Shown here: piece by piece, positions 151 through 34,680 of the stretch
Layout of the letters: the number at the start of each line of letters is the position of its first letter
Position numbering within the stretch: the stretch's first letter is position 1
Position numbers and translations under genes: made by a program
Notes under the pieces: generated by a model
Databases searched by the model: none
What the model saw: the letters and a program-made list of their open reading frames with translations, nothing else
What the model was told of the DNA's origin: nothing
NCBI GenBank assembly: GCA_950097015.1
Contig: CATNEN010000010.1
Span: 372,001 to 436,000, forward strand
Length of the DNA stretch: 64,000 nucleotides
Origin: Macrostomum hystrix
Lineage: Eukaryota > Animalia > Platyhelminthes
Reading direction: 5' to 3'

Positions 151-236
151 GGTCGACCTCACATCACGCCACAGACCGTGGATGTTGTCGGTCGACCTTA
201 CATCACGCCACAGACCGTGGATGTTGTCGGCCGACC
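151..236. repeat. 39-bp tandem duplication (about 2.2 copies) overlapping the 3' end of the first ankyrin gene
   Basis: GGTCGACCT(C/T)ACATCACGCCACAGACCGTGGATGTTGTC starts at 151 and 190, with a partial third copy at 229. Confidence 0.9.
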
Positions 237-1482
237 GGCCCGTCCGGCAGTTGCGGGCCCGCCCCTTCGCCCGTTGGCCGTCGGCGGTCCACGGTCAGGC
301 GGCAGCAGCTTCAGCACCCGGCGCCGATGGCCCATGGCTGTTGCCGTCTCACGCAGCGACCTCGGCCTGCTAGAAGGCATCGCCGCTGCTGCCCCAGCCG
401 CCACCGCCGACCCCGCAGTCCCCGCAGTTAAACTGTCAGACCGGTGGCCGCGATCGCGGATCTCGGCGTTGACGTTGCGGTTGGCCAGCAGCTGTACCAT
501 CTTTCGAGTGTCACCAGCCAGAGTGGCGTGCACGAACTCGAGTGTGGCGCGGCTGCCCTCCAGCAGGTCCACAATCAGGCTGCCGGCACCGACATGGCGG
601 GCGAAGCTGATGAGGCTCTCTCCGTCAGTGCGGGTGATGCGGACTCGAAACCAGCAGCCCAGCAGCCGATCCACCAGGAAATAGTCGCTTGCCTGCAGTG
701 GATCGGAACAGGATTAGGGACATATAAATCGACGAAAATCACGGACAGTCGGGCCTACCTTAACGGCGGCCCACAGTCCGCCTGGAGGAAACTCTTCGTA
801 TGCGCTGCGCGCAGCCTCCGCCGCTGAACGTGCTTCCTCATCTTCGGTGGTAGCAGCCTCTTCAGCAGAATCGACTAGAGCAGCAAAGTCGGCCGACGGT
901 TCCTGGCGGGCACCGCAGCGCAGGAGGGCTCGCGTTAATAGGGGAAGGCGCCGACGCAGAGCGCGACGCAAAGGGGTGTCGCCACTGGCGTCCTCGGCGC
1001 TTGGGTCCACGTGGTGATTCGAGAGGGCGTAGATGAACGGCTCGAAGGCGGTCTCTGTCTGGTGCTCCGCTGTGGATGCCACCAAGTGCAGAAAGTTCAC
1101 GCCGAAGTTGGAGTCGGTGAGTGTGACAGACTGCTGCTGACAGTAGATGGCGTGGTACAGCGCAGACAGACTGCAGCTGACAATGGCTCGGTACACCGGA
1201 GAGCTGGCGAAATCCTTTGAAAAGACATGCAGACTGAAGCTGCCGTCGTTGGGCTCTATGGCTGATAATAAAATTAAGAAAAGCGGTAATCTTTAAACAC
1301 TAAGGAGCCTGCGTATCTTATCCCATACAAATTCTCCCCACCAGCATCGGATCTTCCAAGACTGCCTTACCGGACTCCAGCGAGCTGTCGGAGCAGCTGC
1401 AGTCCTCGATACTGGGATCCTCGCCGTCCAGTATGTCACTGCCATCGCTGTCCGCAGCGTGGTTATTCCGTCTGGAAGCCAT
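198..1482 (-). CDS. Ankyrin-repeat protein with an acidic N-terminus (3 exons, about 369 aa)
   Basis: Exons 1482-1371, 1261-759 and 692-198 join in frame through GT-AG introns (phases 1 and 0). The product is MASRRNNHAADSDGSDILDGEDPSIEDCSCSDSSLES-AIEPNDG..., with ankyrin-like motifs SGDTPLRRALRRRLPLLTRALLRCGA, DGESLISFA and MVQLLANRNVNAEIRD. Confidence 0.65.
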
Positions 1483-2707: not shown

Positions 2708-3997
2708 TCATGGGCTTTCATAAAGTTCCTTAAGAGCCGCCAGCACGACTAGCCGTCTAACTTGAACTCCTTGAGCCGCCCAGATGCTGAAGGCAGCACT
2801 AACCGGCTTGTCAGACATTCCAGCCAGACCTACATCGCTCAGCTGTTCGTCTTGGCGAATCAGTTTGGCAAGGAAGTCCTGAGTTTGTCCACTGTGCAGC
2901 AATCGAATTTCCAGCTCGGCCATTTCCTCTGCTGAATATTCCTCGTCCAGTAAAGGCAGAGCTGTAGGGATGTTGTCGAGCACACTGGGTACAGAGGCCA
3001 CACCACTGTCGACCGAGTTCACGGGCTTCATCCATGATTCGATTCTGAAGCTTGCCATCACTGCAGGAACAACAGTGCTTTGAGTAATGGGGTCCTGCTG
3101 CTCCTCAAAGTCCATCTCAACAGCGGACTCTTCATTCTCGAGTCTGCTGAGAGACAGATCCTCGCCACTGGAGCCTTCGCTGTCCTCCTCCAACGGGTCG
3201 GCGCCGTTGTCAAGGAGGAATCGAGCTGCTTGAACCGCGCCGGCATTCACTGCTGACATCAGCGGCGTCCAGCGATTGCCGCGGTGTTGCCTCTCGTCAA
3301 GGTTGACGTTGATGCCAGTGTTGGTTGCGAAATCCAACAGCAGGCTCAGCATGTCAGTCCGGTCTCGAGTCGCCATCAGGTGAAGCACCGTGTCTCCAGC
3401 ACGGTCATTCATGTGGATGGCGGCAGCTACCTGGCCTGCCACAAGCCTGCCCTCCTCGATCAGAGTCCTTGTTATTCTCAGTCCGGCTTCGAGGACCTCA
3501 ACAGACTCCTCCAGTGCGCAGTGGTGCAGGAAGTTTCGGCCGTTGTTGTCGTACAGTCGGTGAAGCTGAGTCGGCTCTCTGACCAGCAGGCGCTCCATCA
3601 AATTCTCAGCTGAGCTGCCACTCGATGTGCTCAGCATGAGCATGGTTTCCCTACTCTGCGAGCGGTCGTCAAGAGCCTCGGGATTTTGACTAGCCGCAAT
3701 GTCCAACAGCTTCTCGGCCCGCTCGCCCTGCTGCCGCAACAGAGCAGACGCCACGGGATTGTCGCCGTCGCTGTTGCGAACTCTCAGCCTGTCGGAGCTG
3801 CTGTTAAACGCCTGCAAGAGAATTTCTTCACAGTTGGCGCCCTCGCTGTACTGGTGAATTGCAGTGGCCAGAATGCGCGGATAGTCTAGCAGCAGGCGTC
3901 GCTGAATCGCCTGTGGCAGAGCGCGGAACCTCAGGGACTCGGGCGTCTCGCCCTGGGCTTCAGAATCTAGGTTCAGCTGCTGCATTTGAAGATTCAT
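2708..3997 (-). CDS. Ankyrin-repeat protein with a putative C-terminal death-fold domain, paralog A (429 aa, intronless)
   Basis: Long single ORF with ankyrin motifs GDNPVASALL, NGRNFLHHC, AGDTVLHLMA and NRWTPLMSAVNAGAVQAARFLLDNGADP. The tail is helical (PVSAAFSIWAAQ...LVVLAALKEL). The death-fold call is by pattern only. Confidence 0.85.
   Translation of the reverse strand: MNLQMQQLNLDSEAQGETPESLRFRALPQAIQRRLLLDYPRILATAIHQYSEGANCEEILLQAFNSSSDRLRVRNSDGDNPVASALLRQQGERAEKLLDIAASQNPEALDDRSQSRETMLMLSTSSGSSAENLMERLLVREPTQLHRLYDNNGRNFLHHCALEESVEVLEAGLRITRTLIEEGRLVAGQVAAAIHMNDRAGDTVLHLMATRDRTDMLSLLLDFATNTGINVNLDERQHRGNRWTPLMSAVNAGAVQAARFLLDNGADPLEEDSEGSSGEDLSLSRLENEESAVEMDFEEQQDPITQSTVVPAVMASFRIESWMKPVNSVDSGVASVPSVLDNIPTALPLLDEEYSAEEMAELEIRLLHSGQTQDFLAKLIRQDEQLSDVGLAGMSDKPVSAAFSIWAAQGVQVRRLVVLAALKELYESP
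3173..3985 (-). repeat. 813-bp cassette, near-identical inverted copy of 9575-10387
   Basis: Both copies run from ATGCAGCAGCTGAACC to GACAGCGAAGGC and have the same length. I count about 7 amino-acid differences over 271 codons. The flanks do not match at DNA level. Confidence 0.95.
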
Positions 3998-4993
3998 TTG
4001 CTCGAGTTTAAGTTTTAAAGGACTTTTTGTGTCATAAAAACTCTTTGATGGATCTCGCCTTGCGTTTGATTTCGTCTTGAGGCTCTGCAGTATTTATATG
4101 AAATGCAGGGTCGCGGGTTACATGCGAAATAGTTTCTAGCAATTTAGTTAGCTGGGCTCGCCGTGAACAATCCGCGGGTGGAGAACGTTTCTATTTTTAG
4201 ATCTTACGAATTCGCTTCTTACTTGTCAGGCATTGGACAGTGTCTGCATACAGCAGTGCGCGCTTGCAGTTCCAGATTGGGCTGAAATCAACATTGTGCA
4301 GACGCTCACTGACTAGAGACTGGGAGTTGAGGGACAGGAAACTTAAAACTCTAGAGTTTAAGAGGCTGCTTTTGCCTAAAAATGCGCTGCGGGGACAAGA
4401 GGTTTTCAGTTTATCTGCACAAATTTAGTGACAGTTTTTGTTTGGAAGCGGATTAAGGGCTCATATTTTGATATTAGCTTTCTTCATCGATTTCTGTCAA
4501 GCTTTAAAAGCTTTCTGTCAAAGGTTTCATATCCATTTTCCGCTTCTCTACATGCTGTCCCGTGTGCGGTGTAAAATACCTATGCTCCTGAAACAACAAA
4601 ACCACTAAGAAACAAGCTATTTGTTTTCTCTAATTTGATAATCTGATCAATTATCAAATACATTTATGAATATGGAATTCAAGCCTTATGACTCGTTTAT
4701 TGTTTAAGCCCTGTCACTGTTATTAATAAAGGCCTAGTAGTGAAAAAACACGAAGATAAGGTTTTCAGAAATAAAGCTGTGTGAAATTCCTGGAAGCAAC
4801 ATGTAAGGTACATCATATGCTAATAAGAGCTTTATAGATCAGCTTACAAAAATGATGAAAATGAAAAACAAAACCATTCAATGATCTTTTAATTTTCATG
4901 TAAAAAATTCCAATCTCAATCTTTTGGTGAAAACAAGACTCACAAAATTTTTCTGAAAACGTTGCATTTGTCCTTCCACTCTTATAGGTGGAA

Positions 4994-5300
4994 GGGGGTT
5001 GTAGCCTTGTGGCTAGAGCGTCGGACTTACGACTTTAAGGTCGTGAGGCACTTACAACTCCACAGAAACAATTTGTGTCCTTTAGCAATTAGATACATCT
5101 CTGCATTGCTTCAGTTCACCCATCTGTTAAACGGGATGGGCACCAGCAGCAGTTGGAGTAATTGAGGGTGGGCGTGGCGTCCCCCCCCAGTCCATTGACT
5201 GAACAGCCGTACGCAGCATTCAGTCCATGCGCAATAGCTACGGCTGCGCTGTCGGCTGCACATCTGGCCCGATGGAGTTAAAAAACTCCTATATTTCATA
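4994..5300 (+). mobile_element. tRNA-derived SINE (family A) with a CORE-like central block; 3' boundary approximate
   Basis: tRNA-like head GGGGGTTGTAGCCTTGTGGCTAGAGCGTCGGACTT with the B box missing. The block TGTGTCCTTTAGCAA...GCTTCAGTTCACCCATCTGTTAAACGGG resembles the MIR/CORE domain. Block 5176-5206 recurs inverted at 24803-24834. Confidence 0.6.
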
Positions 5301-5417
5301 CGTAAATTTGTGTTTGTTTCACTTCCCCACAGCTATCCTATCCAGCTTCAGTGAGGGAAATACGATTCGCTTGCTGTCATTCACTTACAGATACGGATAC
5401 TGTTGTGTACACATAAC

Positions 5418-6330
5418 ATGGTGACGAGCCTGAGCATTTCCGTGCCACGCGTGTTTCTCGCCTACCCAGGACAGCCACACACGCCTTGGAATCGTTGGAT
5501 CGAAGGATTCAAGATCTACCTGGAGGCCTTGGACCTTAACGAAGCATCGGACGCACGCAAGAAGGCGATACTCATCCATCTGCTTGGCGAGGAGGGCCAG
5601 CGAATCTACGCGCTGAGGAATCTGCCAACGGCAAACGTCGGCACCTTTGACTGGTGAAAGATTTTCAGGAGCAAAGCTGGTGAAAGAGCTGAAGACGATC
5701 TTCGGCGAGTCGCATAGCACCATCAGCAACCGCTACAGATTTAAGTCACGCGCCCAGATGTCTGGCGAGCCGATCAGCCAGTTCGTTGACGCCCTTTGCG
5801 AACTCGCAGCAGACTGCGAATACGGCGCTCTTCAAGACCAGATGATCAGGGACCAGATCATAGAGAAGACCCATTCGCCACGCATCAGAGAGCGACTGCT
5901 CATGGAGAAGGTGCTCGAGCTGGAGACAGCCACAGCCCTAGCGATTCAAGTCGAATCCGCCATCAACGACGCCAAGAACCTGCGCGACGGCAAGAGCGAC
6001 AAGGAGCAGGAGTCCCGCATCCAGAAGATCAGCCAGCGTCCGCCACGCAAGGGTCCCAAGCATGCGATGCCGCAGAAATCTAGCTCGGACGCGCGATGCG
6101 GCAACTGCGGATTGGCTGGGCATGCCACCTGCGCATTGAGTGTCCAGCGAAGGACAAGTCCTGCCTGCACTGCCACCGGGTCGGTCATTTCAAGTCATGT
6201 TGCCGACAGCGACGTAAGGTCCGCACCGTCAAGGATGACGATGACGACAATGAGCCATTCGAGGTGTCTACAGTTTGCCAGGCCAAGATTTCTCACTTCC
6301 GCGACAGTGCCGAGCGGCCTGGACCAGGCT
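5418..6330 (+). pseudogene. Gypsy gag with frameshifts and two CCHC-type knuckles
   Basis: PWNRWIEGFKIYLEAL...KKAILIHLLGEEG shifts frame near 5655 into RYRFKSRAQMSGEPISQFVDALCELAADCEYG..MIRDQII. A second shift near 6135 separates CGNCGLAGH from CPAKDKSCLHCHRVGHFKSCC. Confidence 0.85.
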
Positions 6331-7058
6331 GGCAAAGAAGAAGTTGGGGGGAGAGGCCTATAGACTCAGAGTAACAACTGGGTTCTGTAGGCAAACCTTC
6401 CTTCAACGGAGCGGCCCGGAAGTGACTAAACCGAGCATCTCCAAAAACAACAGTAAGTTCAACCGGACAACAGAGGAGAAGAAGAGCGAACAGGCTAAGA
6501 ACACCAAAACAGAAGACGGAAGAAGAACGACAAAAAAAGGCAAAATGAAACAAAAACTAGTAAAAACTCTAAAGCAACCAAAAATAGAGAGCGGGGAGGA
6601 GGAACGTCGAAGAGAGCTGCCATCCAAGATTATGACCGACAACGTACCGAGCATTCGAATACCTAGTCCCTCTGGACCATCCACATCGACTCAGCGGTGG
6701 CAAGCGGCTGCAGGTCGGCCATGCCTGGCCTCGTGCGGCGGAGGTGGCGCTGTTCCAACTCGGCGAACCGCGCGCCTTTCCTGCAAGCTACCCTACACCG
6801 CTGGGGCAAGGTACCCGCTGCGTCTTGCCCCCCACTGCAACGCTCCCCAGGAGGACACGCGGAACTTCCTGCTCGACTGCCCCAGGTGGGCCGATCAACG
6901 CCGCAACATCCTCCATTCTTCTGGCTCAATGTCCCTCCTGTGGGAGGACCCACAGGGAGAGAGAATCAAGAGAATCGGGTGCGGATCTTCATCGAGGCGA
7001 CGGCGCGCTGCCCCCCATATGCCTAGCGAGGGATCCGTACGCCAACAACAACAACAAC
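6330..7058 (+). mobile_element. Internally deleted non-LTR retrotransposon (LINE 3' end, I/Nimb/Ingi-like) inserted in the gypsy element; 5' boundary approximate
   Basis: A composite of frames at 6720-6910 gives VALFQL..RAPFLQATLHRWGKVP.ASCPHCNAPQEDTRNFLLDCPRWADQRR, the typical LINE ORF2 C-terminal zinc knuckle. It ends in a (CAA)5 tail at 7043-7057. Confidence 0.7.
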
Positions 7059-7799
7059 GGGCCCCAGTTCACCAGCCACGCATTCGAGGAGTTCCTGGCC
7101 GGCCAAGGCGTGAAGCACATCAAGACTTCGCTGTACCATCCGCAGTCGAACTCGAATGTCGAGCGGCTCAACCGTACGCTGAAGGAGTCGTTGAAGGCCC
7201 ATCTCAAGGTCGGCATTAGCTTCAAGAAGGCGCTCCGCGAGTTTCTGCAGTGCTACCGGTCAACGGCGAATGCGACCACGGGCCTGACGCCTGGAGAGCT
7301 GATGATCAGCCGGCCGCTCCGAGGGCCACTCAACAAGTGGAGCCGAGGCATCCGCCAGCCGACATCGAAAGCGACATCAGCGGAGGCCACGGAGCGACGA
7401 GACCAAGCCAACAAGGAGAAGGCCAGGCTAGCCACCGATTGTCGTCGAGGCGCCCGACCTTCACGACTGCAGGCTGGCGACACTGTGCGCGTCCGCCGGC
7501 CACAGACTGCTCACAAGCTGCGACATGGCTGGGCGACGTTCGGCAAATCATTCGTCGGCTGGGCCCCGAGTCCTGGCTGCTCGAAGACGGCTCGCGATGG
7601 CACTCCGATAACCTGGACAGCGTACCCAGTACACCAGCGGCGGACCAGTGACGCGTCCGACGTTGGACTCGGCACACTGATGGCGCCGACACCATTGCCG
7701 GAGCCACCGGTGAGGCCGCCGGGCAACGAGAGGCCGCTGCCACAGCCTAGGCGAGGCAGCCGGGTCCGGAGACCGCCAAGTCGGTTCAGCCCGAGTTGA
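7056..7799 (+). pseudogene. Truncated gypsy integrase core and C-terminus
   Basis: NGPQFTSHAFEEFLAGQGVKHIKTSLYHPQSNSNVERLNRTLKESLK is the rve core from the second Asp region onward. There is a frameshift near 7525 and an RRGSRVRRPPSRFS C-terminus. Confidence 0.85.
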
Positions 7800-7900
7800 T
7801 ATGCAATTTGCAAATGAAGTTAATGAACTGTTGAATTTGCGCACCAATGGACTGTTGTTTTCCCCATCCGTTAATCCCCTTTTGCTTTCGAAGGGGGTGA

Positions 7901-8126
7901 TGCTGTGTATGCGGCTTACATGCCGCCTTAGAGTGCGCGTGGCGCTTTTTGATTGGCTGGGGGTCGGTCTGTCCAAACCAGTCTATGCCGGGATAGGGGG
8001 TAATTGTTGTTTTCTCTGACTGACTAAAATATATATTAGTGCGCAAGGCCCTTGGAGGGCTCGCGTTTTTTCAACCTTCTAACCCAGTGCTCCGTTCTTC
8101 ATTTCTTCGCTGCCTCACACATAACT
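7901..8126 (+). repeat. 3' LTR of the gypsy element (about 225 bp)
   Basis: Directly follows the polypurine tract. Its termini TGCTGTGTA and ACACATAAC match the two halves of the 18-bp remnant at 5401-5418. Confidence 0.65.
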
Positions 8127-9511
8127 AGGCCTAAATAAATTGGGGACATTTAAATAAATAAATTAAAACACGCAAAATTCACAAATGGCCTTGTTAGAAA
8201 AGCATCAATTTTGTGGATTTTCCGCGGAATTGCCGGGGCGAGAAAATTAACTTAAAACGTTCCACGGACTTGCCACGGACTGGCCGCGGACTGACCGCGG
8301 AGTCGTACACACTGCTGTAGATTAAAAGCTCTGTGCCATTTTTAGTACCTTGTTCTATGAATCTATGCTAAGTAATTATTGTTATAAGTAAATTATTTTT
8401 TTAAGTTATTGGTAATTGGTGTCACAAAAAAGAAGATAATATAACAGACGAAAAACAAAACGAAGCAATAAGTGAACATTAGTTTTTTAGGCCTAATTAT
8501 TAGTTTATTCACAGTTTAAGTAGCTAACTCATGACTGTAGGTACTAGGCTTAGCTTACACTTACAAACTAAGCCTAGCACACAGCACACACACAGGAAAA
8601 CCTGAGCAAACTGTAGTTTTTTACTTGTCTCTTAAAAACAGTTTTTATAGCTTATTAAACTATGTATCAAATCTTACATTTATAATTATCAAGTAGCTAT
8701 TATAATAATTAGGAACAAGCTCCAATCTATATATTATTAAGAGCCTATGGCCTCTGCAAATGCAGATTTCCTCTGGCCCATATTTATGCTAGTCATAGCT
8801 AGGCCCAAGCTTTCTTGAATCTTGATAGATACTTACATTTCAGCATGTAACTAGGTTAGTAGATACTTTACTAGTATAAAAATATTTTTGCAATGATTCT
8901 TGATGTTAGCAATTAGCAATATTATAAATCAGTTGCATAGTACTTCCTATAACATTTGGGAAATAGTTCTGGGAAAAAACTTTCAGCCTTACATTGTGAT
9001 AACTATATGTAGCTATAGTGTATTGAAATAGTACTGTAGCTAACTATTAAACTCATTAGAAAATATAACTTCTAGCTTATCTTAACAGTTTATTATCTGA
9101 AAAAGTAAATACAGTCATTTTCACTTTCAATTAAATTATTTTTATATCTGAAACAAGTAGGTTAGCTAGCTATTGGTTGGTTGGTTGTTAATATTTATAG
9201 GTAGGCCCCTGTAGCTAGAATTGATAATACATCAACTTATAATCTTAGGAAAGGTCATAAACATTACAATGTCAATGGTATTACCAATTGTGTGGCCTAT
9301 GTAGACCAAGAATCTGAATATAGAACCTTTGGATAAAGCTTTTTTAAAGCTAATTGATAATTACTAATTGATTTCCTTGTTGGCTATTGTTCAATATAAA
9401 ATGTCTCTAGTCTACTTTTTATACCCTAAATTCAAATGAAAAACATCAAGTTCAGTTTAAGCTGCATACTCAATATCATGAGCTTTTCATTTCTAAAATA
9501 CTTTCAGCACA

Positions 9512-10864
9512 ATGCAAGGCCAGTCACCTCGAAGTAGCAAGACCAGGCAGCAGCCTGCCAGCTTGGAGGGCCGGATGCAGCAGCTGAACCTGGATTCTGA
9601 AGCCCAGGGCGAGACGCCCGAGTCCCTGAAGTTCCGCGCTCTGCCACAGGCGATTCAGCGACGCCTGCTGCTAGACTATCCGCGCATTCTGGCCACTGCA
9701 ATTCACCAGTACAGCGAGGGCGCCAACTGTGAAGAAATTCTCTTGCAGGTGTTTAACAGCAGCTCCGACAGGCTGAGAGTTCGCAACAGCGACGGCGACA
9801 ATCCCGTGGCGTCTGCTCTGTTGCGGCAGCAGGGCGAGCGGGCCGAGAAGCTGTTGGACATTGCGGCTAGCCGAAATCCCGAGGCTCTTGACGACCGTTC
9901 GCAGAGTAGGGAAACCATGCTCATGCTGAGCACATCGAGTGGCAGCTCAGCTGAGAAGTTGATGGAGCGCCTGCTGGTCAGAGAGCCGACTCAGCTTCAC
10001 CGACTGTACGACAACAACGGCCGAAACTTCCTGCACCACTGCGCACAGGAGGAGTCTGTTGAGGTCCTCGAAGCCGGACTGAGAATAACAAGGACTCTGA
10101 TCGAGGAGGGCAGGCTTGTGGCAGGCCAGGTAGCTGCCGCCATCCACATGAATGACCGTGCTGGAGACACGGTGCTTCACCTGATGGCGACTCGAGACCG
10201 GACTGACATGCTGAGCCTGCTGTTGGATTTCGCAACCGACACTGGCATCAACGTCAACCTTGACGAGAGGCAGCACCGCGGCAATCGCTGGACGCCGCTG
10301 ATGTCAGCAGTGAATGCCGGCGCGGTTCGAGCAGCTCGATTCCTCCTTGACAACGGCGCCGACCCGTTGGAGGAGGACAGCGAAGGCGTCACCGTCGCTG
10401 AAATGGCTGCGGCAACAGGAAGTCCGGAGCTTACTGAGCTGTTCCGCGAGGGCGTGGCTGACGGCCTGGCTGCTGCTGCTGGCTCTGATCCACCGGAGCC
10501 GGAGGCGGCTGCAGCTGGAGAGGCCGCGCCATGGATGACGCAAGGCCCGCCGGTGCGCACGGTGGACAGCGGCATGGGCACCACTGGCGAGCTTCAGCAA
10601 CAGTCGGCGGCCGCCACTCCGGCGCCGGTCCGCAGCCTGTCCACCGAAGAGCAGCAGCACCTCGTCCGGAGCCTCACCCAGCGTGGCAAGGAATTGGCTT
10701 TCGTTGAGGCCTTCACCCGCAGCCACGCAGACACGGTGACTCTGGCCAGGATGTCGGAGAAGCCGATTGAGTCCCTGATCACGAGCCTGGCCCACGAGCC
10801 AGGCTTCAGCGGTCTTATTCAGCAGGCTCTGTGCAGCATTGGCGCGGAGGACCTCCTGGCCTAG
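9512..10864 (+). CDS. Ankyrin-repeat protein with a putative C-terminal death-fold domain, paralog B (450 aa, intronless)
   Basis: Same ankyrin block as paralog A. The distinct C-terminus ends LIQQALCSIGAEDLLA, which resembles the death-domain L..AL..IG..DL helix. Confidence 0.85.
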   Translation: MQGQSPRSSKTRQQPASLEGRMQQLNLDSEAQGETPESLKFRALPQAIQRRLLLDYPRILATAIHQYSEGANCEEILLQVFNSSSDRLRVRNSDGDNPVASALLRQQGERAEKLLDIAASRNPEALDDRSQSRETMLMLSTSSGSSAEKLMERLLVREPTQLHRLYDNNGRNFLHHCAQEESVEVLEAGLRITRTLIEEGRLVAGQVAAAIHMNDRAGDTVLHLMATRDRTDMLSLLLDFATDTGINVNLDERQHRGNRWTPLMSAVNAGAVRAARFLLDNGADPLEEDSEGVTVAEMAAATGSPELTELFREGVADGLAAAAGSDPPEPEAAAAGEAAPWMTQGPPVRTVDSGMGTTGELQQQSAAATPAPVRSLSTEEQQHLVRSLTQRGKELAFVEAFTRSHADTVTLARMSEKPIESLITSLAHEPGFSGLIQQALCSIGAEDLLA

Positions 10865-11320
10865 TCTGCTGCGACCAGAGCTGCTTGAGTGTGTAGATTA
10901 ATTAATCTCCTGGCCCAAGGCGTTTTGGGTGGCTTTCTTTACAATTTGAGGCGTGTAAAAAGTGCACTGCTTAGCTGTTTTATTACTCTTTTTATAAAGC
11001 AAATGAGGGAATATCTGGCAATGCGTGTTCCGACGCATTGTTGCTGGCACAAAGCTTTGGATTTGGTTTTATTTAACTGTTACTCCAGTTATCTCTACAG
11101 TTACTTTTCATAATTAGCAAAATGTGTTTGACCCAGCTTTTCTGCTTTCAGTGTAAATGGATTTTAATTAGAAGAAAAGACAACAATATTTCACCTGAAA
11201 TAAAAGAAATATATAAGAATGCAAATTTATAAATATAACTGCCAGTAAAATGTCATTACATTGCTCGGTTCTTTATTGTTTATATGGTTCAAATTAGCCT
11301 CATTCACTAAAATTCAGTGT

Positions 11321-12033
11321 AACCCCTGGTTCAAATGCACCCCATTCACTCAAATCCCCTGGTTCAAATGCACCCCATTCACTGAAATCCCCTGGTTCAA
11401 ATGCACCCCATTCACTGAAACCCCTGGTTCAAATGCACCCCATTCAGTGAAACCCCTGGTTCAAATGCACCCCATTCAGTGAAACCCCTGTTTCAAATGC
11501 ACCCCATTCAGTGAAACCCCTGTTTCAAATGCACCCCATTCAGTGAAACCCCTGGTTCAAATGCACCCCATTCAGTGAAACCCCTGGTTCAAATGCACCC
11601 AATTCAGTGAAACCCCTGTTTCAAATGCACCCCATTCACTGAAACCCCTGGTTCAAATGCACCCCATTCAGTGAAACCCCTGGTTCAAATGCACCCCATT
11701 CAGTGAAACCCCTGGTTCAAATGCACCCCATTCAGTGAAACCCCTGTTTCAAATGCACCCCATTCAGTGAAACCCCTGTTTCAAATGCACCCCATTCAGT
11801 GAAACCCCTGTTTCAAATGCACCCCATTCAGTGAAACCCCTGGTTCAAATGCACCCCATTCAGTGAAACCCCTGTTTCAAATGCACCCCATTCACTGAAA
11901 CCCCTGGTTCAAATGCACCCCATTCAGTGAAACCCCTGTTTCAAATGCACCCCATTCAGTGAAACCCCTGGTTCAAATGCACCCCATTCAGTGAAACCCC
12001 TGGTTCAAATGCACCCAATTCACTGAAATCCCC
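11321..12033. repeat. Minisatellite, 32-bp unit, about 22 copies
   Basis: Unit AAACCCCTG(G/T)TTCAAATGCACCCCATTCA(G/C)TG; period checked at 11461 and 11493. Confidence 0.97.
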
Positions 12034-12558: not shown

Positions 12559-13954
12559 TCACAACTCGTCTGAAATATTAAATAGGACTTAATTAAGTAG
12601 TTAAGTAAGTAGGTTAAGTAATTAAGTAGGACTTAACGAGCACATCGTCACTACCTAGGAATTTGTGCAATTCAAACTCACCCCTTTCCTCTGGGGCTGT
12701 CGACTCCGTGGAATCCCCATTGAGAGTTTCCGCGGAATCGCCGCTGGGAGTCTCCGTGGAATCTACACTTGGAGTTTCCACGGAATCACGGCGGGGAGTC
12801 TCCGCCGGTTCCGGCTCGCAGTCGCCACCAGCCGCAGGTCGCCGATAGCCAGACAAGCAGTGGCAGGCGAAGCTGCCGGGAGAGTTCACGCAGGTCTCGT
12901 GCGGCCCAGAGCACGGGCTGGTAACGGATGCGCACTCGTCCACGTCAATGCAGGTGACTCGACCGTCGGCATCGGAGGCAGTGGTGTCGGCACTGGGCTC
13001 GTAGCCAGCGGCGCAGTCGCGGCAGTCGCTGACGCCGGAGCCAGCTACGCAGCCGGCAGGTCCGCAGGCCGGATGGCAGGCGAGGCAGAGCGGCGAGCTG
13101 TCGGCCAGGTAGCGGCCCGCATCGCACTTGTCGCACAGATCGCCCCCGTAGCCGACGTGGCAGTTGCAACGACCGCTGCCTGATCGGGTGCCGTTGCCGT
13201 CGCAGTCACCGCGCAGACCGCAGGCGGGGCAGGCCGCACACTTCGGCCCAAAGGAGCCATGCGGGCAGCAGAGCTGGCCTCGATCCACGCAAAGAAGGCT
13301 GCGCAGGGTGGCGGCGGCTACGGCTGATGAGCCGGCTGGATCGCGACGGAAATCGCCGAACCACCAGGCCTCGAGGGCCTCCTCGAACTGCTCCAACAGG
13401 GCGTGGCATACAGCCGTCTCCTCCTTGCCTTCGCCCTGGCAAAGCCGCTCCTGTGGAAATCAGAATGCATGTTCCTACCATACTACTACTGCCATGCAGT
13501 ATTCATAAGTAGAGTGATCGGATCTGTCTAGTTTCTAGGATCAGGAATCGGGATCGTAGAGGATTCTGAGAATGAGCATTGGGATCCTACGACTGACATA
13601 ATTTATTCTGGGATTTGGTTTAGATAATCGGGATCGTATGATTGTGAATATATCCTGTGACTTGGTATTGGCATTGAAAAAATGAGATTATGCAACCTGG
13701 ATGTCAACCAGCCGGGTCTCGCTGTGCGCCCAGCTGCCCAGCCGGCTCTCCTCCCAGTGCGTGTTTCCGCCGCCGAAGTTGTCCTTGGCCGTACGCTGCA
13801 GGCCGTTCTCGAATGCCTCGGTCAGCTTGTTACAGACGCTGCATTTGTCTGGCGCGGCAGTTGCTAGGCTGGCCCATAGCAGCAGCAGAGCCAAAGCTAG
13901 CAGGTGCTGTTGCTGCACTGCTAAGTAGCTTCCGCGTGTAGCTTGGCGATACAT
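12559..13954 (-). CDS. CRELD: Cysteine-rich with EGF-like domains protein, soluble ER type (3 exons, 345 aa, C-terminal RDEL)
   Basis: Exons 13954-13697, 13450-12682 and 12569-12559. Signal peptide, CSVC, TAKDNFGGGNTHWEESRLGSWAHSETRLVDI, LEQFEEALEAWWF, CCPHGSFGPKC, EGF/furin repeats and a cbEGF (CIDVDEC...CVNSPGSFACHC). The spliced end reads EERDEL*. Confidence 0.93.
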
Positions 13955-20316: not shown

Positions 20317-23001
20317 GGCTCACAACGCTTTGAAAATGCCAGCCTCTCCCTACTTCACTGGCTCACTCATTTTTTTATAGTCCGATTCAGCAGGCCAGGC
20401 ATTGCTCTATCTCTACGGCCGGTGGCCGCGGCTCAAGTCACTCTGCAAACGGCAAACGGCTGTTTGCGCTGCAACTGCCTCTCCCGCCACTTGCCCACCC
20501 CCTGAATAAATTTGCCGCGAGTCAACATGCATTCCCAGCTGGAAGGTACTTTCTCAGCCGGAATCGGCGCCAAAGCAGAAGCTCACCTGACTGCATCGAG
20601 CAGAGCTGCCGTAGGAGTCGGTAGTGTGCTCACCAGCTGCTGCTCAAGACTGTTGCCGTGCCTCTGCCATGCTGAACTTCAGCTCAGGTGAAGTAGTTCC
20701 TTTTTAGCAGGCTCATCAGGTGCCTCGCCCACTGCCACGCCCTGGGGTGAAGGGAAATCCGATCAGAGAGCGGCTTATCAGCTTTTAGTCAGGACTCAAT
20801 TCTGAGTATTCCATTTCATTTTCTGATCTGCAAATCTTTGCCCAGCGATAATGGCACGCACTCTGCTGCGTTGGTGGAATTGACGTTTAGAATTGACATG
20901 CCGACTAAGCCATCTTGAACCATTACCTAAAATATGCTCAATGGGGAGGCTGTCTATGTCGAGGAAATACGCTCGTAGGGAGTGGCATTTACTTGCTGGC
21001 CTAGTTGCTGGCCGCCTTTTAGAGAGAAATTATCATGATAGCTGTGACGAGCCGTGGAGCGAACGCGGCATTGTACGAGCTACTTGAAGTAGGCGGTATA
21101 GTAACACTCGTAACACTAAGGGGTTATGCCCCAATTGACAGTAAAATAAATTATGCTACGAGTACAAATTTTGGCCTCATTATAATTATTTTTTTATTAG
21201 CATTAGATTATTACGCATACGCATAACTTAACGCAATACATAATATACACAATACACACACAATACACAATACGATTACGCATAGCATTGGGGAGAACAG
21301 CGACCAATCAGGATGGAGGAAAGGATAGAGAATAAGAGATCAGCGAGCAGAGATGATGAAGAAATGATGATGATGAAAATAAATTTCTTTGCAACGACAA
21401 TCTTATGCATGTGTGTTTATATACGCAAGGAGTACATGCCGATGGATGCTCCCAAGTACGTTACGCTTGACTAAAACTTTGCTGAGCGACCAACATGCTC
21501 AGAACTAATTGCTTTAACTGTTTAGACTTAGACTGTTGGATGCAACCCAACCTGACTCCTGACACCTTATTTTGGTAATTATAACGCAAATCCTTCAGAT
21601 GATTGACCGGCGCCTGCGACGAAACAGCATAAGCCCCGGCAAACCCTAAATAAATCCATCTTGACTTATAGCTGCAGGGCGCACTGGCCGAGTGGATGCA
21701 GCTGAGGAGCCGCCCATTTCGCTATCCCCTGGCAACCAGACGACCTCTAGCGAGGTAACCTAACCGTCCTATGCAGACTTTCTTTATTTAATTACAAAAT
21801 AAATTTATTGGCAGAAGGGAAAAACTAAATTAATCGTAGAAGTACAATAGGATGCCAAGTGTGATTCGATCCATGCGTCACGTAAATGATGGGGGCTCTG
21901 CGAAAATTCGATTCAGAATAAGTCTTCATGTGGAGTTTATACAAATTGTTTCTAAACTCCTATTGCATTATTCGTGCACCCTGGTGGCTTAGAGGGTGAA
22001 ACACGTTTGACTTCAAGACGTTTTTTGAGCGAAAGTAAACAAGACTAACAAAGCTAACGAGAACAATATATTTTAAAGAAAATTGAACAAAAATAGTAAT
22101 AACTAATGCATTTAATAGTAAGTATAAAATATTTTTTAAGAACTAACTCTTCTGTGTGCGCATTTTGATTTAGAAAAATGAGGTACCGTGAAGTTTTAAC
22201 TTGGTACCTTGATATTTTCGATTTCGATCATTTTCAATCAAAAGGATATGGTGTTATTTTAAGTCAATACAAATACACAGATACAGAGCTTTGTTTTTTA
22301 AAACTTCCTAGAACACATAATGTCATGACTCAAATTCATTGGTCTCTAGCTTTTTTACTTAGCTTTTTGTTACTTTTTCACTGTATCATTATATTATCTG
22401 TCGGTATATATATAATATAAATGATATAATTAAAAAATATTATATAAAAATATGATAAAAACATATAGCATGTGCTTTCTATTTTGCAGTTATTATCTAT
22501 CATTTTATTGACTTAAAACAGTCTGTCAATTTACTTATAACATGATATATAATGTGTTACAAATAAGCTTATGCTACAAATGCTGGTGCTACAGAAGCCA
22601 GAAAATAAAAATAAATCAACGAAACATTTAAATGCAGGATAATGAATTCAGTCGGAAATTTTTAGGCTTAGTTCTAATAATATTTGAACTTTAGGGAGAA
22701 ACATATCCTTTAAAATTTAATCACTTAACAAAAATATGCAGGCAACAAGTTTTAGACACCTCTATACAAATTATTGTTCCATTTACTTTAATGACAGGTT
22801 TATGAACTTTCTCTTTCTATTAGTTGAATACCCAGTAGCAATGATTTCAAGATCACTTGAATTATACTAATATATAGTTTAAGTAGTTATAACCAAATAA
22901 TTTATGAGTGAATTCATTGTGTTTATTGCAAATTCAATCCAAAAGGTTCCTGCTCACAAAATTAATGTGAACTCAGCCTCAATCTATTGCAGCTTCATGC
23001 C

Positions 23002-23924
23002 ATGGGCCAGCAATCACCAGCCGATCTAGCCAGCCGGCTGCAGGAGGCTATCTGCAATGGCGACTCGGCTGGAGCCAAGCAGGTGGTTGGGCAGCTCTGC
23101 CGCCAGGGCGGCGCCATCCGTGTGTTCCCGCAGTCCGGGGAAGGCCTCCTTGTGAAGGTGTTCTTCCACGACAAGGATAGCGATCTGGAGAAGCCCCGCC
23201 TGTTCAAATTCAGCACAGCCAGCACCGTGGCGGAGCTGAAGATGCGCGTGGCCGCCGAGCTGGAGATTCCGCGCCAGTCGCAGTGCTGCATCGCCTGCGG
23301 CCGAATTCCAACGGACGACACGCCACTTGGCGAGCTTGAGCAGCAGCATGAGGTGGTCGTCCATCTCTACCTGCTCACCAAGGACATCTTCCGCTATCGA
23401 TGGGATCGTGAGAGACTTCCACAGGCTGCAGCCGATGCCGCCACCGCCGTGACCGCTTCTGCTGCTGCTGCCGCCGCCGCCGCTGCCGCTCAGAAAGTTT
23501 GGGCCGAGCCGCGTCCTCAGAAGCAGCCGCTGAGGCCGCAGCCTCTGCCGAAGCAGCAGCCAGAGGCACCGAAAGTGCAGGAGGTGCGTCAATGCGAGCT
23601 AGAATGTCTGCAATTTCCTACACCTGAGGAATTATTCCATTCTATGCAAGTCACAGAAGGCAGTGTCGGTGTCAATTTTAACAACCGCATGAGAGTTTAT
23701 TTTATATAGGTTTTTCAAATTAGCGCGCAGAACTGAATTTTGTTAAAATCGCTCTAATTATAATTTTCGGTTGTCCCGCCCGCACACAGCCCGGCTGGCA
23801 CTGCCCGACTTGTACTTACCGGAACCGGCCGGAGCGGCCAGGCTGCGAGATTTGCACGACGGCCCGGCCAGAGGGATTTCTGAATGCCAACGAGGAGAAT
23901 GTGTATGACGAGCCGGAATACTAG
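23002..23924 (+). CDS. SHARPIN/HOIL-1(RBCK1)-like protein: LTM + ubiquitin-like + NZF zinc finger (2 exons, 238 aa)
   Basis: Exons 23002-23583 and 23790-23924 (phase 0). [25 protein letters not shown] is LTM-like. [40 protein letters not shown] is a [29 protein letters not shown] is an NZF/RanBP2 finger. Confidence 0.85.
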
Positions 23925-27733: not shown

Positions 27734-28363
27734 AGCGACAGGTGCCCTCAGCACCGCTGCAGCCTTAGAACTTCCGCCCGCGCGATGCGCCCAGTTTGAG
27801 TCGGAGCCTGAAAAGCTGAGTGTTCAGCGATGCTTTCCTTAGAACCGGTTCCTATCGAGCGAATCAGGATTAAGGATGCATCCCTAACCCCATGCAGCTC
27901 GTACTCATACCCGAATCGCAACCAGGTCCCACATTTTGCAGATAAATTTCAGTTCAATTTTGAGTAATTGATTTCGATTCCCAATTTTTTCTTGCTTTGG
28001 ACTCGCCTTTTGACATAAAAATTGCACCATTTTTTTCTTATGACATAAGCACATTTCAACAAACGAAAAATAGGATTTTGAAACCGTTATTTGTTGCTTC
28101 ATGTCCAATAGTTGCTATAATCAATCAAATTTGTAAACAAAAAGTTATCTCTAAGGGTACCAAAATTTACAACACTCTTATCTTTGACAGACTAATGGTC
28201 GCTTCAAGTCGAAGCCGAAATTACTAATTAAGGATTACTGCATCAGCATGCTGTAATATATTATTTCTGTTCGTTAATTGTAGTAAAAATATAACGCAAA
28301 GTATTGCATAATATTTGCGCCAAACGCTTTATCTGGAGCTATTCGCTTTATTGCTGGTCCACT

Positions 28364-30899
28364 GGCACAGATGCAGGTAGCTGGGTTTGAGAGTGGAACA
28401 GATGCAGGTAGTTGGGTTTGAGAGTGGAACAGATGCAGGTAGCTGGGTTTGAGAGTGGAACAGATGCAGGTAGTTGGGTTTGAGAGTGGCACAGATGCAG
28501 GTAGCTGGGTTTGAGAGTGGAACAGATGCAGGTAGTTGGGTTTGAGAGTGGAACAGATGCAGGTAGTTGGGTTTGAGAGTGGAACAGATGCAGGTAGTTG
28601 GGTTTGAGAGTGGAACAGATGCAGGTAGTTTGGTTTGAGAGTGGAACAGATGCAGGTAGCTGGGTTTGAGAGTGGAACAGATGCAGGTAGTTGGGTTTGA
28701 GAGTGGAACAGATGCAGGTAGTTGGGTTTGAGAGTGGAACAGATGCAGGTAGTTGGGTTTGAGAGTGGAACAGATGCAGGTAGCTGGGTTTGAGAGTGGA
28801 ACAGATGCAGGTAGTTGGGTTTGAGAGTGGAACAGATGCAGGTAGTTGGGTTTGAGAGTGGAACAGATGCAGGTAGCTGGGTTTGAGAGTGGAACAGATG
28901 CAGGTAGTTGGGTTTGAGAGTGGAACAGATGCAGGTAGTTGGGTTTGAGAGTGGAACAGATGCAGGTAGTTGGGTTTGAGAGTGGAACAGATGCAGGTAG
29001 CTGGGTTTGAGAGTGGAACAGATGCAGGTAGCTGGGTTTGAGAGTGGAACAGATGCAGGTAGCTGGGTTTGAGAGTGGAACAGATGCAGGTAGTTGGGTT
29101 TGAGAGTGGAACAGATGCAGGTAGTTGGGTTTGAGAGTGGAACAGATGCAGGTAGTTGGGTTTGAGAGTGGAACAGATGCAGGTAGCTGGGTTTGAGAGT
29201 GGAACAGATGCAGGTAGCTGGGTTTGAGAGTGGAACAGATGCAGGTAGCTGGGTTTGAGAGTGGAACAGATGCAGGTAGTTGGGTTTGAGAGTGGAACAG
29301 ATGCAGGTAGCTGGGTTTGAGAGTGGAACAGATGCAGGTAGCTGGGTTTGAGAGTGGAACAGATGCAGGTAGCTGGGTTTGAGAGTGGAACAGATGCAGG
29401 TAGTTGGGTTTGAGAGTGGAACAGATGCAGGTAGCTGGGTTTGAGAGTGGAACAGATGCAGGTAGCTGGGTTTGAGAGTGGAACAGATGCAGGTAGCTGG
29501 GTTTGAGAGTGGAACAGATGCAGGTAGCTGGGTTTGAGAGTGGAACAGATGCAGGTAGTTGGGTTTGAGAGTGGAACAGATGCAGGTAGCTGGGTTTGAG
29601 AGTGGAACAGATGCAGGTAGTTGGGTTTGAGAGTGGAACAGATGCAGGTAGCTGGGTTTGAGAGTGGAACAGATGCAGGTAGTTGGGTTTGAGAGTGGAA
29701 CAGATGCAGGTAGTTGGGTTTGAGAGTGGAACAGATGCAGGTAGCTGGGTTTGAGAGTGGAACAGATGCAGGTAGTTGGGTTTGAGAGTGGAACAGATGC
29801 AGGTAGCTGGGTTTGAGAGTGGAACAGATGCAGGTAGCTGGGTTTGAGAGTGGAACAGATGCAGGTAGCTGGGTTTGAGAGTGGAACAGATGCAGGTAGC
29901 TGGGTTTGAGAGTGGAACAGATGCAGGTAGTTGGGTTTGAGAGTGGAACAGATGCAGGTAGCTGGGTTTGAGAGTGGAACAGATGCAGGTAGTTGGGTTT
30001 GAGAGTGGAACAGATGCAGGTAGCTGGGTTTGAGAGTGGAACAGATGCAGGTAGTTGGGTTTGAGAGTGGAACAGATGCAGGTAGCTGGGTTTGAGAGTG
30101 GAACAGATGCAGGTAGTTGGGTTTGAGAGTGGAACAGATGCAGGTAGTTGGGTTTGAGAGTGGAACAGATGCAGGTAGCTGGGTTTGAGAGTGGAACAGA
30201 TGCAGGTAGTTGGGTTTGAGAGTGGAACAGATGCAGGTAGCTGGGTTTGAGAGTGGAACAGATGCAGGTAGCTGGGTTTGAGAGTGGAACAGATGCAGGT
30301 AGTTGGGTTTGAGAGTGGAACAGATGCAGGTAGCTGGGTTTGAGAGTGGAACAGATGCAGGTAGTTGGGTTTGAGAGTGGAACAGATGCAGGTAGCTGGG
30401 TTTGAGAGTGGAACAGATGCAGGTAGCTGGGTTTGAGAGTGGAACAGATGCAGGTAGCTGGGTTTGAGAGTGGAACAGATGCAGGTAGCTGGGTTTGAGA
30501 GTGGAACAGATGCAGGTAGTTGGGTTTGAGAGTGGAACAGATGCAGGTAGCTGGGTTTGAGAGTGGAACAAATGCAGGTAGTTGGGTTTGAGAGTGGAAC
30601 AGATGCAGGTAGCTGGGTTTGAGAGTGGAACAGATGCAGGTAGTTGGGTTTGAGAGTGGAACAGATGCAGGTAGCTGGGTTTGAGAGTGGAACAAATGCA
30701 GGTAGTTGGGTTTGAGAGTGGAACAGATGCAGGTAGCTGGGTTTGAGAGTGGAACAGATGCAGGTAGTTGGGTTTGAGAGTGGAACAGATGCAGGTAGTT
30801 GGGTTTGAGAGTGGAACAGATGCAGGTAGTTGGGTTTGAGAGTGGAACAGATGCAGGTAGCTGGGTTTGAGAGTGGAACAGATGCAGGTAGCTGAGGGT
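28364..30899. repeat. Minisatellite, 31-bp unit, about 80 copies
   Basis: Unit GGGTTTGAGAGTGGAACAGATGCAGGTAG(C/T)T; period checked at 28383 and 28414. Confidence 0.98.
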
Positions 30900-32361
30900 G
30901 AGAGTGGGCGAGAGACGTCACTGAGGGTGAGATCAATATCATATCTATAGCATTTTGCCATCAAGCACTTGTAGATAAGCAGTCAACGGAAACATGGCTG
31001 AAGTCAGGATTATTTTATTAAGCATTTTTTGTGAAGCGCAAAGCGTCACGAAAAAATGAATAAGTAATTAGGAATCAATTCAGCGGCCTGTGACATGTTG
31101 CTTCAGGAAAGAAAAAACCGATGCCCTGTCCACCGCATTGATCACACGGGAATTAAAGTGCATTGGCTTGTCACAGATGGATTTGCATATTATTCATGCT
31201 CGGAGGGGACATGCCGAGCTGCCAGACGGTTTGACAGGCACACCGCTGCCAGTTCGGCACAATGCAACAGTCCAGAGCTCTCTCAGGGTGCAGCGGACAG
31301 GGTCGTACGCAAAAGTGCAGCCCGCGCGGCTCAGCCGATTGCCAACATCCGGTCAGGGGTGTAGGCCCACACCGCTTCATCAGTTTCGAACCATTCGATA
31401 AGAAATGAACCAGACTGAATTCGAGCTTCAGACAGTCATTCTGGACCAGCGATAGCAGAGTTCCAACTCGGAGCGGAAATTTGCCTCAGTAATTTTAATC
31501 AGAGGGGAGCTTCATTTTCCCACTGCTCGGCAGTCACTCAAGTGGCCACTTCCTCTTTCGAAATACTCGTATTATACGTTTTCTTCACATTGCTCATATA
31601 GACGTTACTGTTAGAGTTTATCCTTGATTTGACTTAGCTGTAGCGTGCATCCGACCGGCGGCTGGCTACCAGCTACGCTTCGCAGAAGAAGCAGTGCCGC
31701 TCCGATCGAGGGACCCGTCGATCTACGGTGTGCCGCAGGTATCGGCCTACCAGGTAGATGTTCTGTTGTCTGCAAGAGTTGGAGAGGTCGCTGGGTTTGG
31801 CTTGAGATACTTGAGTCTTGAGAGCCCTGGCCAAGACCGGGCAGTGGCAGATAAAGTTCTCCGCGTTTCACAGTCAAAGCTGCACAAGAGACGCAAAACT
31901 ATCCGCTAGGACTTGGCCTTGAAGGAAACAGTGGCTATACAGAATCAGCCATGCCCCGAGAGGGCCATTGCTGACTGCTCTGAGATGGCTGCGGCTGAGC
32001 TTTATGGGAGCTCTGAGCAGCTGAGGGTTTATTCTTGGTACACGAGCTAATTTAGGAGTCCTTTTAAACTGAGCTGATGAAGGGAGTAGTGGAGTTTAAG
32101 TCGGGCTGCTGAGGAATCTGTTACTCCTGCGTGCTCTGTCTGAAGAGAATATGTAATCTCTAGGTCTGTCTAGGGACCAAAACTCTATAATGGCTACTGG
32201 CAGCGTATCCTAGAAGTGTTTAGATGCGTTTCCTAAGATGCGACAATTTTAGAGTTAGCAAAATTAGATACGTAGCTGCAAAGCTTTCTAAACTGTGAGC
32301 CAAACCGACGTAACTGTGGCGGTTGCGTTGCTGCACTGAGAGTTAGGACACAGTCACAGTC

Positions 32362-33291: not shown

Positions 33292-34680
<1,389 letters not shown>

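Follow-up and report, generated by a model that had tools for sequence, protein, structure and literature searches.

Macrostomum-restricted ankyrin-repeat proteins with an invariant DSG motif and a predicted C-terminal death fold: a candidate phosphodegron in an IkB/p105-like module set

Introduction

Do two head-to-head genes of the flatworm Macrostomum hystrix encode proteins that follow the logic of the IkB/p105 inhibitors? The question is raised by a 64,000-nucleotide stretch of the genome (contig CATNEN010000010.1, positions 372,001 to 436,000; hereafter the window, with positions counted from its first letter), where the single-exon open reading frame (ORF) of paralog A on the minus strand (2708-3997, 429 aa) and that of paralog B on the plus strand (9512-10864, 450 aa) lie about 5.5 kb apart. 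An earlier note, made from the letters of the window, had pointed to a DSGxx(S/T) motif and a helical tail in both C-termini and had proposed a p105/IkB-like architecture. Here, we provide evidence that A and B are members of a Macrostomum-restricted family of intronless, expressed genes, whose products combine ankyrin repeats, an invariant DSG motif in a presumably disordered linker and a C-terminal domain predicted to adopt the death fold.

The phosphodegron of IkB-alpha is formed by S32/S36, while in p105 the death domain recruits IKK and the phosphodegron is read by beta-TrCP (PMC8286839). Platyhelminthes have been reported to lack p50/p105 (PMC11432056), the Rel-homology domain proteins of planarians are divergent (PMC13563047), and it is difficult to identify clear homologs of NF-kB in these animals (PMC11432056, PMC13563047). 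In human HEK293T cells, beta-TrCP was bound by co-expressed planarian beta-catenins whose GSK3 sites are conserved (PMC5643146), which indicates that flatworm proteins do carry beta-TrCP-type degrons.

Results

Family members and domain anatomy

A word search among 5.8 billion clustered proteins returned three hypothetical proteins of M. lignano, P0001, P0002 and P0003 (64%, 61% and 44% identity, respectively), the remainder being generic ankyrin similarity. An exhaustive hmmsearch of 1.84 billion representatives with the tail profile found the Macrostomum family only. The family comparison comprised five members, namely A, B and the three M. lignano proteins, which make up three old lineages.

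Ankyrin families were the only ones matched when proteins A and B were scanned with Pfam. The AlphaFold2 (AF2) full-length model shows six helix-pair ankyrin repeats (residues 77-302) and an N-terminal helical cap. The ankyrin-repeat cassette occupies 3173-3985 on the minus strand in A, where it is marked by Pfam Ank matches and by an inverted repeat with B, and 9575-10387 on the plus strand in B, where it is marked by Pfam Ank matches and by windows of high identity; the Met common to the two proteins lies at 3985 in A and at 9575 in B. In B, the cassette is followed by the last, capping ankyrin repeat (10388-10465; Pfam Ank_4 at residues 264-311, modelled helices at 274-281 and 284-302). According to the alignments, this repeat is retained in B and in every M. 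lignano member and is degenerate in A, where the corresponding region (2963-3172, minus) also contains an acidic, poorly conserved linker. The linker of B (10466-10636, plus) is modelled with a predicted local distance difference test (pLDDT) value below 50, both in the full-length model (residues 297-352) and in that of the tail (24-77). The tails end the proteins, the A-type at 2711-2962 (minus; ortholog P0002) and the B-type at 10637-10861 (plus; ortholog P0001).

The DSG motif

The segment 2993-3010 of the minus strand translates as DSGVAS in A and the segment 10565-10582 of the plus strand as DSGMGT in B, each preceded by V. The two fall into one alignment column of a linker that is 21% identical between A and B, as against 97% for the ankyrin part, which confirms the homologous position and the poorly conserved linker seen in the earlier note. 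Conservation in homologs, named there as a test of the proposal, was found throughout: the pattern (V/I)DSG(V/M)x(S/T) is invariant in all five members, with one match per protein in the same column. The alignment shows DSG to be strictly kept, the preceding residue to be V or I, position +3 to be V or M and position +5 to be S or T, in a linker that is otherwise 21-45% identical among members and variable in its spacing to the last ankyrin repeat and to the first helix of the tail.

The motif codons show synonymous differences (AGC/AGT, GGC/GGT), and DNA identity around the motif is at the background level of 0.38-0.45, outside the conversion tract described below, so that recent conversion is not the cause of its conservation. 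A DSGxx[ST] string appeared in about 1.6% of the shuffles of one such protein. The triplet DSG is the sole 3-mer common to all six distinct linkers, and when three independent linkers were shuffled 20,000 times, a shared 3-mer followed by hydrophobic-x-[ST] never arose. Both the full-length and the tail models of AF2 have pLDDT below 50 around the motif, which is presumably a disordered segment. Judged from the sequences, we are thus dealing with a conserved short linear motif.

The beta-TrCP phosphodegron is described by an ELM-type pattern, D-S-G-x(2,3)-[ST]. As read from the alignment, the Macrostomum motif fits the beta-TrCP consensus at every position, with its Asp, Ser, Gly, hydrophobic +3 and S/T at +5, which makes a degron function plausible. 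Motif searches of the members revealed neither a conserved upstream lysine at the usual ubiquitin-acceptor distance nor an IKK docking motif, and both results speak against a degron of this type. The same kind of search found no TRAF6 or TRAF2 motif conserved at the site, and the caspase consensus [DE]xxD[GSA] did not match at the motif Asp, where P4-P3 vary.

The C-terminal domain

When AF2 was supplied with a five-sequence alignment of the tails, the ~75 C-terminal residues of B were modelled as six short helices with pLDDT of about 90, and the full-length model agrees. The helical domain of roughly 70 residues that had been expected C-terminal to the motif thus takes the form of six helices over about 72 residues. 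The model was compared with known structures in the VIA scan, which was exhaustive over 48,161 Protein Data Bank (PDB) representatives. Death-fold proteins took 49 of the top 50 places, the remaining one being a de novo design. Among the leading matches were the death domain of the PIDD/RAIDD oligomeric complex (2of5_A, score 8.1), the NLRP1 CARD (8.1), the Apaf-1 CARD (8.0), the NF-kB p100 death domain (8.0; 79 residues aligned at 23% identity) and the NF-kB p105 death domain (7.8); DD, CARD and DED chains were equal in Z. The top Foldseek matches of the tail were the death domains of UNC5H2, TRADD, p75NTR, Pelle/Tube and p105, with template-modelling (TM) scores by target of 0.57-0.62 and E above 1. 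In a PDB search with the profile of the domain, the four best matches were all to the p75NTR death domain; they align in register over helices 5-6, but their E of about 0.09 falls short of significance.

Several searches returned nothing of use. Pfam Death, CARD or SAM gave no match in the whole proteins or the tails (Death and SAM being silent at E up to 10), phmmer of the A tail against PDB sequences found nothing useful, and the ESM Atlas shape search was uninformative (TM scores of at most 0.31). The ESM Atlas feature search with the tail offered SAM-like or EcoEI-like leads below the lead threshold of 0.9.

Taken together, the models predict for the tail a death fold, i.e., a compact antiparallel six-helix bundle, which was the outcome that the earlier note had made decisive for its proposal; within this fold, the tail most likely belongs to the death-domain subclass. 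For the A tail, the death fold is predicted by homology to the B-type tail, whose fold was modelled. Outside the Macrostomum family, the tail appears as a sequence orphan.

Gene conversion and the age of the tails

The window contains an inverted repeat of 97% identity (3152-3985 and 9575-10408). Across 3985-3173 and 9575-10387, i.e., over an 813-bp shared ankyrin cassette that is about 98% identical, the DNA of A and B is 97-100% identical per 60-bp window, dropping to 30-50% on either side. At the protein level, the ankyrin part is 97% identical between A and B and 99% within M. lignano, but 77% between the species. As the ankyrin part is more alike within than between species, we conclude that the cassette alone has been homogenized by gene conversion, independently in each species. 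The death-fold parts behave differently: B is 58% identical to P0001 and A is 42% identical to P0002, whereas cross-type identity is 26-28%. The tails thus group by type across species, indicating that the A and B types predate the species split. In an hhalign comparison of their profiles, the two tail types proved homologous from end to end (probability 95.8%, E 8e-9, 76 columns).

In M. lignano, the locus L001 bears an A-type and a B-type gene in tandem on one strand (4364-5716 and 9938-11419), upstream of an EGF_CA gene on the opposite strand, and the locus L002 has three copies on one contig in the order B, A, B (1162, 4337 and 9938). The window carries the same EGF_CA neighbour at 12614-13954 (minus), but here the gene A is inverted, and this inversion has produced the head-to-head pair with retroelement debris between. 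The spacer (5400-7800, plus) holds decayed gag/PNMA-like and integrase-like ORFs with weak, sub-threshold Pfam matches (PNMA E 0.0025, rve_3 E 0.0076). The neighbour at 12614-13954 has a calcium-binding EGF domain (Pfam EGF_CA) and, by its sequence, looks CRELD-like; it would comprise two exons, the first of them coding for a signal peptide.

Expression of the genes

Contigs of the public RNA runs X4 and X5 span only 9507-11184, are colinear with the genome, and have neither joints nor flanks. The contigs of X4, X5 and X2 begin at 9507 and are preceded by 20 letters absent from the genome. Together with the G at 9507, these letters are the 3′ end of the 35-nt Macrostomum spliced leader, the sequence of which is printed in PMC8629364. 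The leader end on the contigs, the AG acceptor behind a pyrimidine-rich tract at 9506-9507 (plus) in the genomic letters and the lack of joints allow us to conclude that the B mRNA is trans-spliced to the spliced leader and is intronless. The RNA assembly graph forks at 10387, where one contig enters the B tail and another begins with the A tail sequence, thus indicating that each tail directly adjoins the ankyrin cassette in the transcripts. It was also considered that the tails might stem from reading through an intron beyond a splice donor at the identity break; the RNA contigs, which run colinear across the break into both, rule this out. A and B are both real, transcribed, intronless genes.

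The spliced leader ends in ATG. Joined at 9507/9508, this ATG is out of frame with the B main ORF (window 9480-9545) and starts an upstream ORF of 10 codons overlapping the in-frame ATG that comes first in the B mRNA, at 9512. By leaky scanning, the true start of B may be either 9512 or the conserved Met at 9575.

Other features of the window

Two ORFs at the edge of the window (198-1196, minus) have ankyrin-like stretches with no Pfam match at E 0.01; they may belong, as exons, to a further diverged ankyrin gene that is truncated where the window stops. At 33292-34665 (minus), six tandem copies of a 228-bp unit (99% identity) coincide with a 457-aa ORF, which looks like a polyubiquitin gene since 228 bp correspond to 76 codons. 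An ORF with a ubiquitin-like domain lies at 22987-23706 (plus; Pfam ubiquitin E 2e-5, just under the cut-off), and an exon at 40404-41162 (plus) encodes the end of a calpain protease domain and calpain domain III (Pfam E 1e-41 and 3e-26). Four large satellite arrays account for extreme GC skew and long overlapping pseudo-ORFs at 28363-30907 (31-bp unit × 82), 48468-49374 (17-bp unit × 53), 49756-50596 (21-bp unit × 41) and 51323-53717 (32-bp unit × 75).

Discussion

Comparison with known systems

The combination of ankyrin repeats, a DSG motif and a death fold is real, and it parallels the C-terminal half of p105/p100 (IkB-gamma), which likewise comprises an ankyrin block, a death domain and a phosphodegron. 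In contrast to p105/p100, the Macrostomum proteins have neither a Rel-homology domain nor a glycine-rich region, and their modules are ordered differently: in every member, the motif is placed after the ankyrin block and before the death domain, whereas the degron of p105/p100 follows the death domain. IkB-alpha, -beta and -epsilon and Drosophila Cactus also combine about six ankyrin repeats with a DSG-hydrophobic-x-S phosphodegron read by SCF-beta-TrCP/Slimb. The IkB degron, though, is N-terminal, before the ankyrin block, and the Macrostomum motif comes after it, so that neither canonical order is observed.

The full-length model, with six ankyrin repeats, falls within the six to seven of the IkB family, and IkB-beta ranked second and fifth when this model was compared by Foldseek. 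Upon VIA re-ranking, IkB-beta was found at rank 48, tied with generic ankyrins, and the best 60 matches in a phmmer search of the ankyrin part against the PDB were ankyrins, NOMPC and DARPins, with no IkB among them. The ankyrin part therefore appears generic, matching generic ankyrins and DARPins as well as IkB-beta, and showed no IkB-specific signal in these searches. Sequence homology to p105/p100 was not detectable by the word search, the tail-profile search or Pfam. Hence, of the p105/IkB-like architecture proposed in the earlier note, the parallel in module set holds, but no kinship was found behind it, the ankyrin part being generic, the tail an orphan and the module order another one. 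Descent from the IkB/p105 family, or membership of it, is unproven because of the generic ankyrin part, the differing position of the motif and the lack of an IKK docking motif or a conserved upstream lysine; the family may represent either a relict stand-alone inhibitor or a case of convergence.

Two other systems share some of these features. ANKDD1A/ANKDD1B are likewise stand-alone proteins with ankyrin repeats followed by a C-terminal death domain, as described in PMC6318269. Homology to ANKDD1 was not found, nor was any animal homolog outside Macrostomum, either by the word search (apart from generic ankyrins) or by the exhaustive tail-profile search. To our knowledge, no conserved DSG degron separates the ankyrin part of ANKDD1 from its death domain. 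The N-terminal degron of beta-catenin, an unrelated protein, has the same hydrophobic-DSG-hydrophobic-x-S consensus, including hydrophobic residues at -1 and +3. Unlike in beta-catenin, the flanks of the Macrostomum motif contain no consistent downstream S/T ladder for CK1/GSK3 priming.

Proposed mechanism and its alternatives

The domain anatomy, the conservation of the motif, the predicted disorder and fold, the expression and the gene conversion are the established part, on which a mechanism may be proposed. The protein consists of about six ankyrin repeats behind an N-terminal helical cap, a presumably disordered linker with the motif, and a predicted death-fold end of about 72 residues. 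The death domain would dock it into a death-domain signalling complex, possibly with a death-domain kinase, while the ankyrin solenoid would hold a partner. Upon signalling, both hydroxyl residues of the motif would be phosphorylated by the kinase in the complex, thereby creating a phosphodegron for a beta-TrCP (Slimb/LIN-23-type) SCF. Ubiquitination by SCF-beta-TrCP would then lead to degradation or processing of the protein and free the ankyrin-bound partner, according to the logic of IkB/p105. The old A and B tail types probably plug into different death-domain partners, while gene conversion would hold the partner-binding ankyrin cassette identical between A and B. To this whole proposal, i.e., the anatomy together with a beta-TrCP phosphodegron controlling an ankyrin/death-domain protein, we assign a probability of roughly 0.4, and it should be taken as tentative.

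The conservation and the disorder of the motif show that it is functional but do not name its reader, so that it might instead be another short linear motif, such as a docking site for a kinase or phosphatase, phospho-dependent or not, or a stretch that occupies the groove of its own ankyrin repeats, in the manner of the autoinhibitory segments of ankyrins. The protein would then be an ankyrin/death-domain scaffold whose stability is not controlled by beta-TrCP. The absence of acceptor lysines at the usual distance and of an IKK docking motif would agree with this, and an ankyrin groove kept identical between the paralogs by gene conversion would suit a shared intra- or intermolecular ligand. 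We nevertheless consider such a scaffold rather unlikely, although it has to be reckoned with, given that every position of the beta-TrCP consensus is matched, down to the hydrophobic residue at -1, which the beta-catenin degron also has; moreover, AF2 docks no linker onto the ankyrin part, though its confidence there is too low to count. The invariant Asp has also been viewed as P1 of a caspase-type site, x-x-(V/I)-D|S-G, cleavage at which would split the protein between ankyrin module and death domain, in the way that Dredd cuts Relish. The strictness of this Asp, the small residues at P1′ and P2′, V/I at P2 and the exposed, disordered position between two domains all suit a protease. But P4 and P3 are unconserved (R/N/G/S and T/S/Y/L), none fits [DE]xxD, and P4-P2 as a whole are not caspase-like; cleavage would also leave unexplained why Ser, Gly, the hydrophobic +3 and the S/T at +5 are conserved, with Ser, Gly and +5 as strict as the Asp itself. 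The caspase-type site raised in the earlier note thus fits less well, and we regard cleavage there as improbable.

A different objection concerns the tail, which could be another small helical module, e.g., SAM; the proteins would then be ANK-SAM type scaffolds, and the analogy to p105 would be void. The language-model neighbours of the whole protein are indeed ANK+SAM clusters (score 0.96-0.97), those of the tail alone are SAM-like (0.82-0.84), and the Pfam Death model is silent. These matches, though, share few features (124-137 of 256), with the tail scores below the lead threshold, and the SAM models of Pfam likewise give no match at E up to 10. The VIA top 50 is free of SAM structures, with 49 places belonging to death-fold proteins; the model has six helices and SAM five, and the best sequence matches are to the p75NTR death domain (E ~0.09). 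The ANK-SAM reading suggested by the ESM Atlas leads was therefore rejected on structural grounds, and a SAM-like or other non-death module seems highly improbable to us. Finally, all the sequences come from one genus and gene conversion is active at the locus, so that the motif might be a functionless neutral remnant, kept by chance or by recent conversion. This can hardly be believed, since the motif lies outside the conversion tract, in DNA whose identity is at the background level (0.38-0.45), the tail types are older than the species split, synonymous codon differences are present, and none of the 20,000 shuffles reproduced the pattern.

If the phosphodegron proposal is carried further, the family would supply functional inhibitors of the IkB/p105 type in a phylum reported to be without p105: the stand-alone protein would be brought by its death domain directly to a death-domain kinase of the Pelle/IRAK or RIPK type, the DSG motif would be phosphorylated there, beta-TrCP would mediate the destruction of the protein, and a divergent Rel-homology factor or another transcription factor would be released, with the two ancient tail types wiring a shared cargo cassette, maintained by gene conversion, to two different upstream death-domain pathways. 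We offer this extended scenario as a speculation that is distinctly improbable in its entirety.

Conclusions

In this work, we describe a lineage-restricted variant of a known design, in which ankyrin repeats, a degron-type motif and a death domain are combined. The locus is a clean case of domain-limited gene conversion, as the ankyrin cassette keeps 97-99% identity in each of two species, whereas that of the death domains next to it has fallen to 26%. The innate-immune and cell-death signalling of flatworms is poorly mapped, and the family provides a concrete handle on it, being open to experiment in the model species M. lignano. If the motif is a working degron, the family would represent an independent or relict IkB/p105 switch with a new module order.

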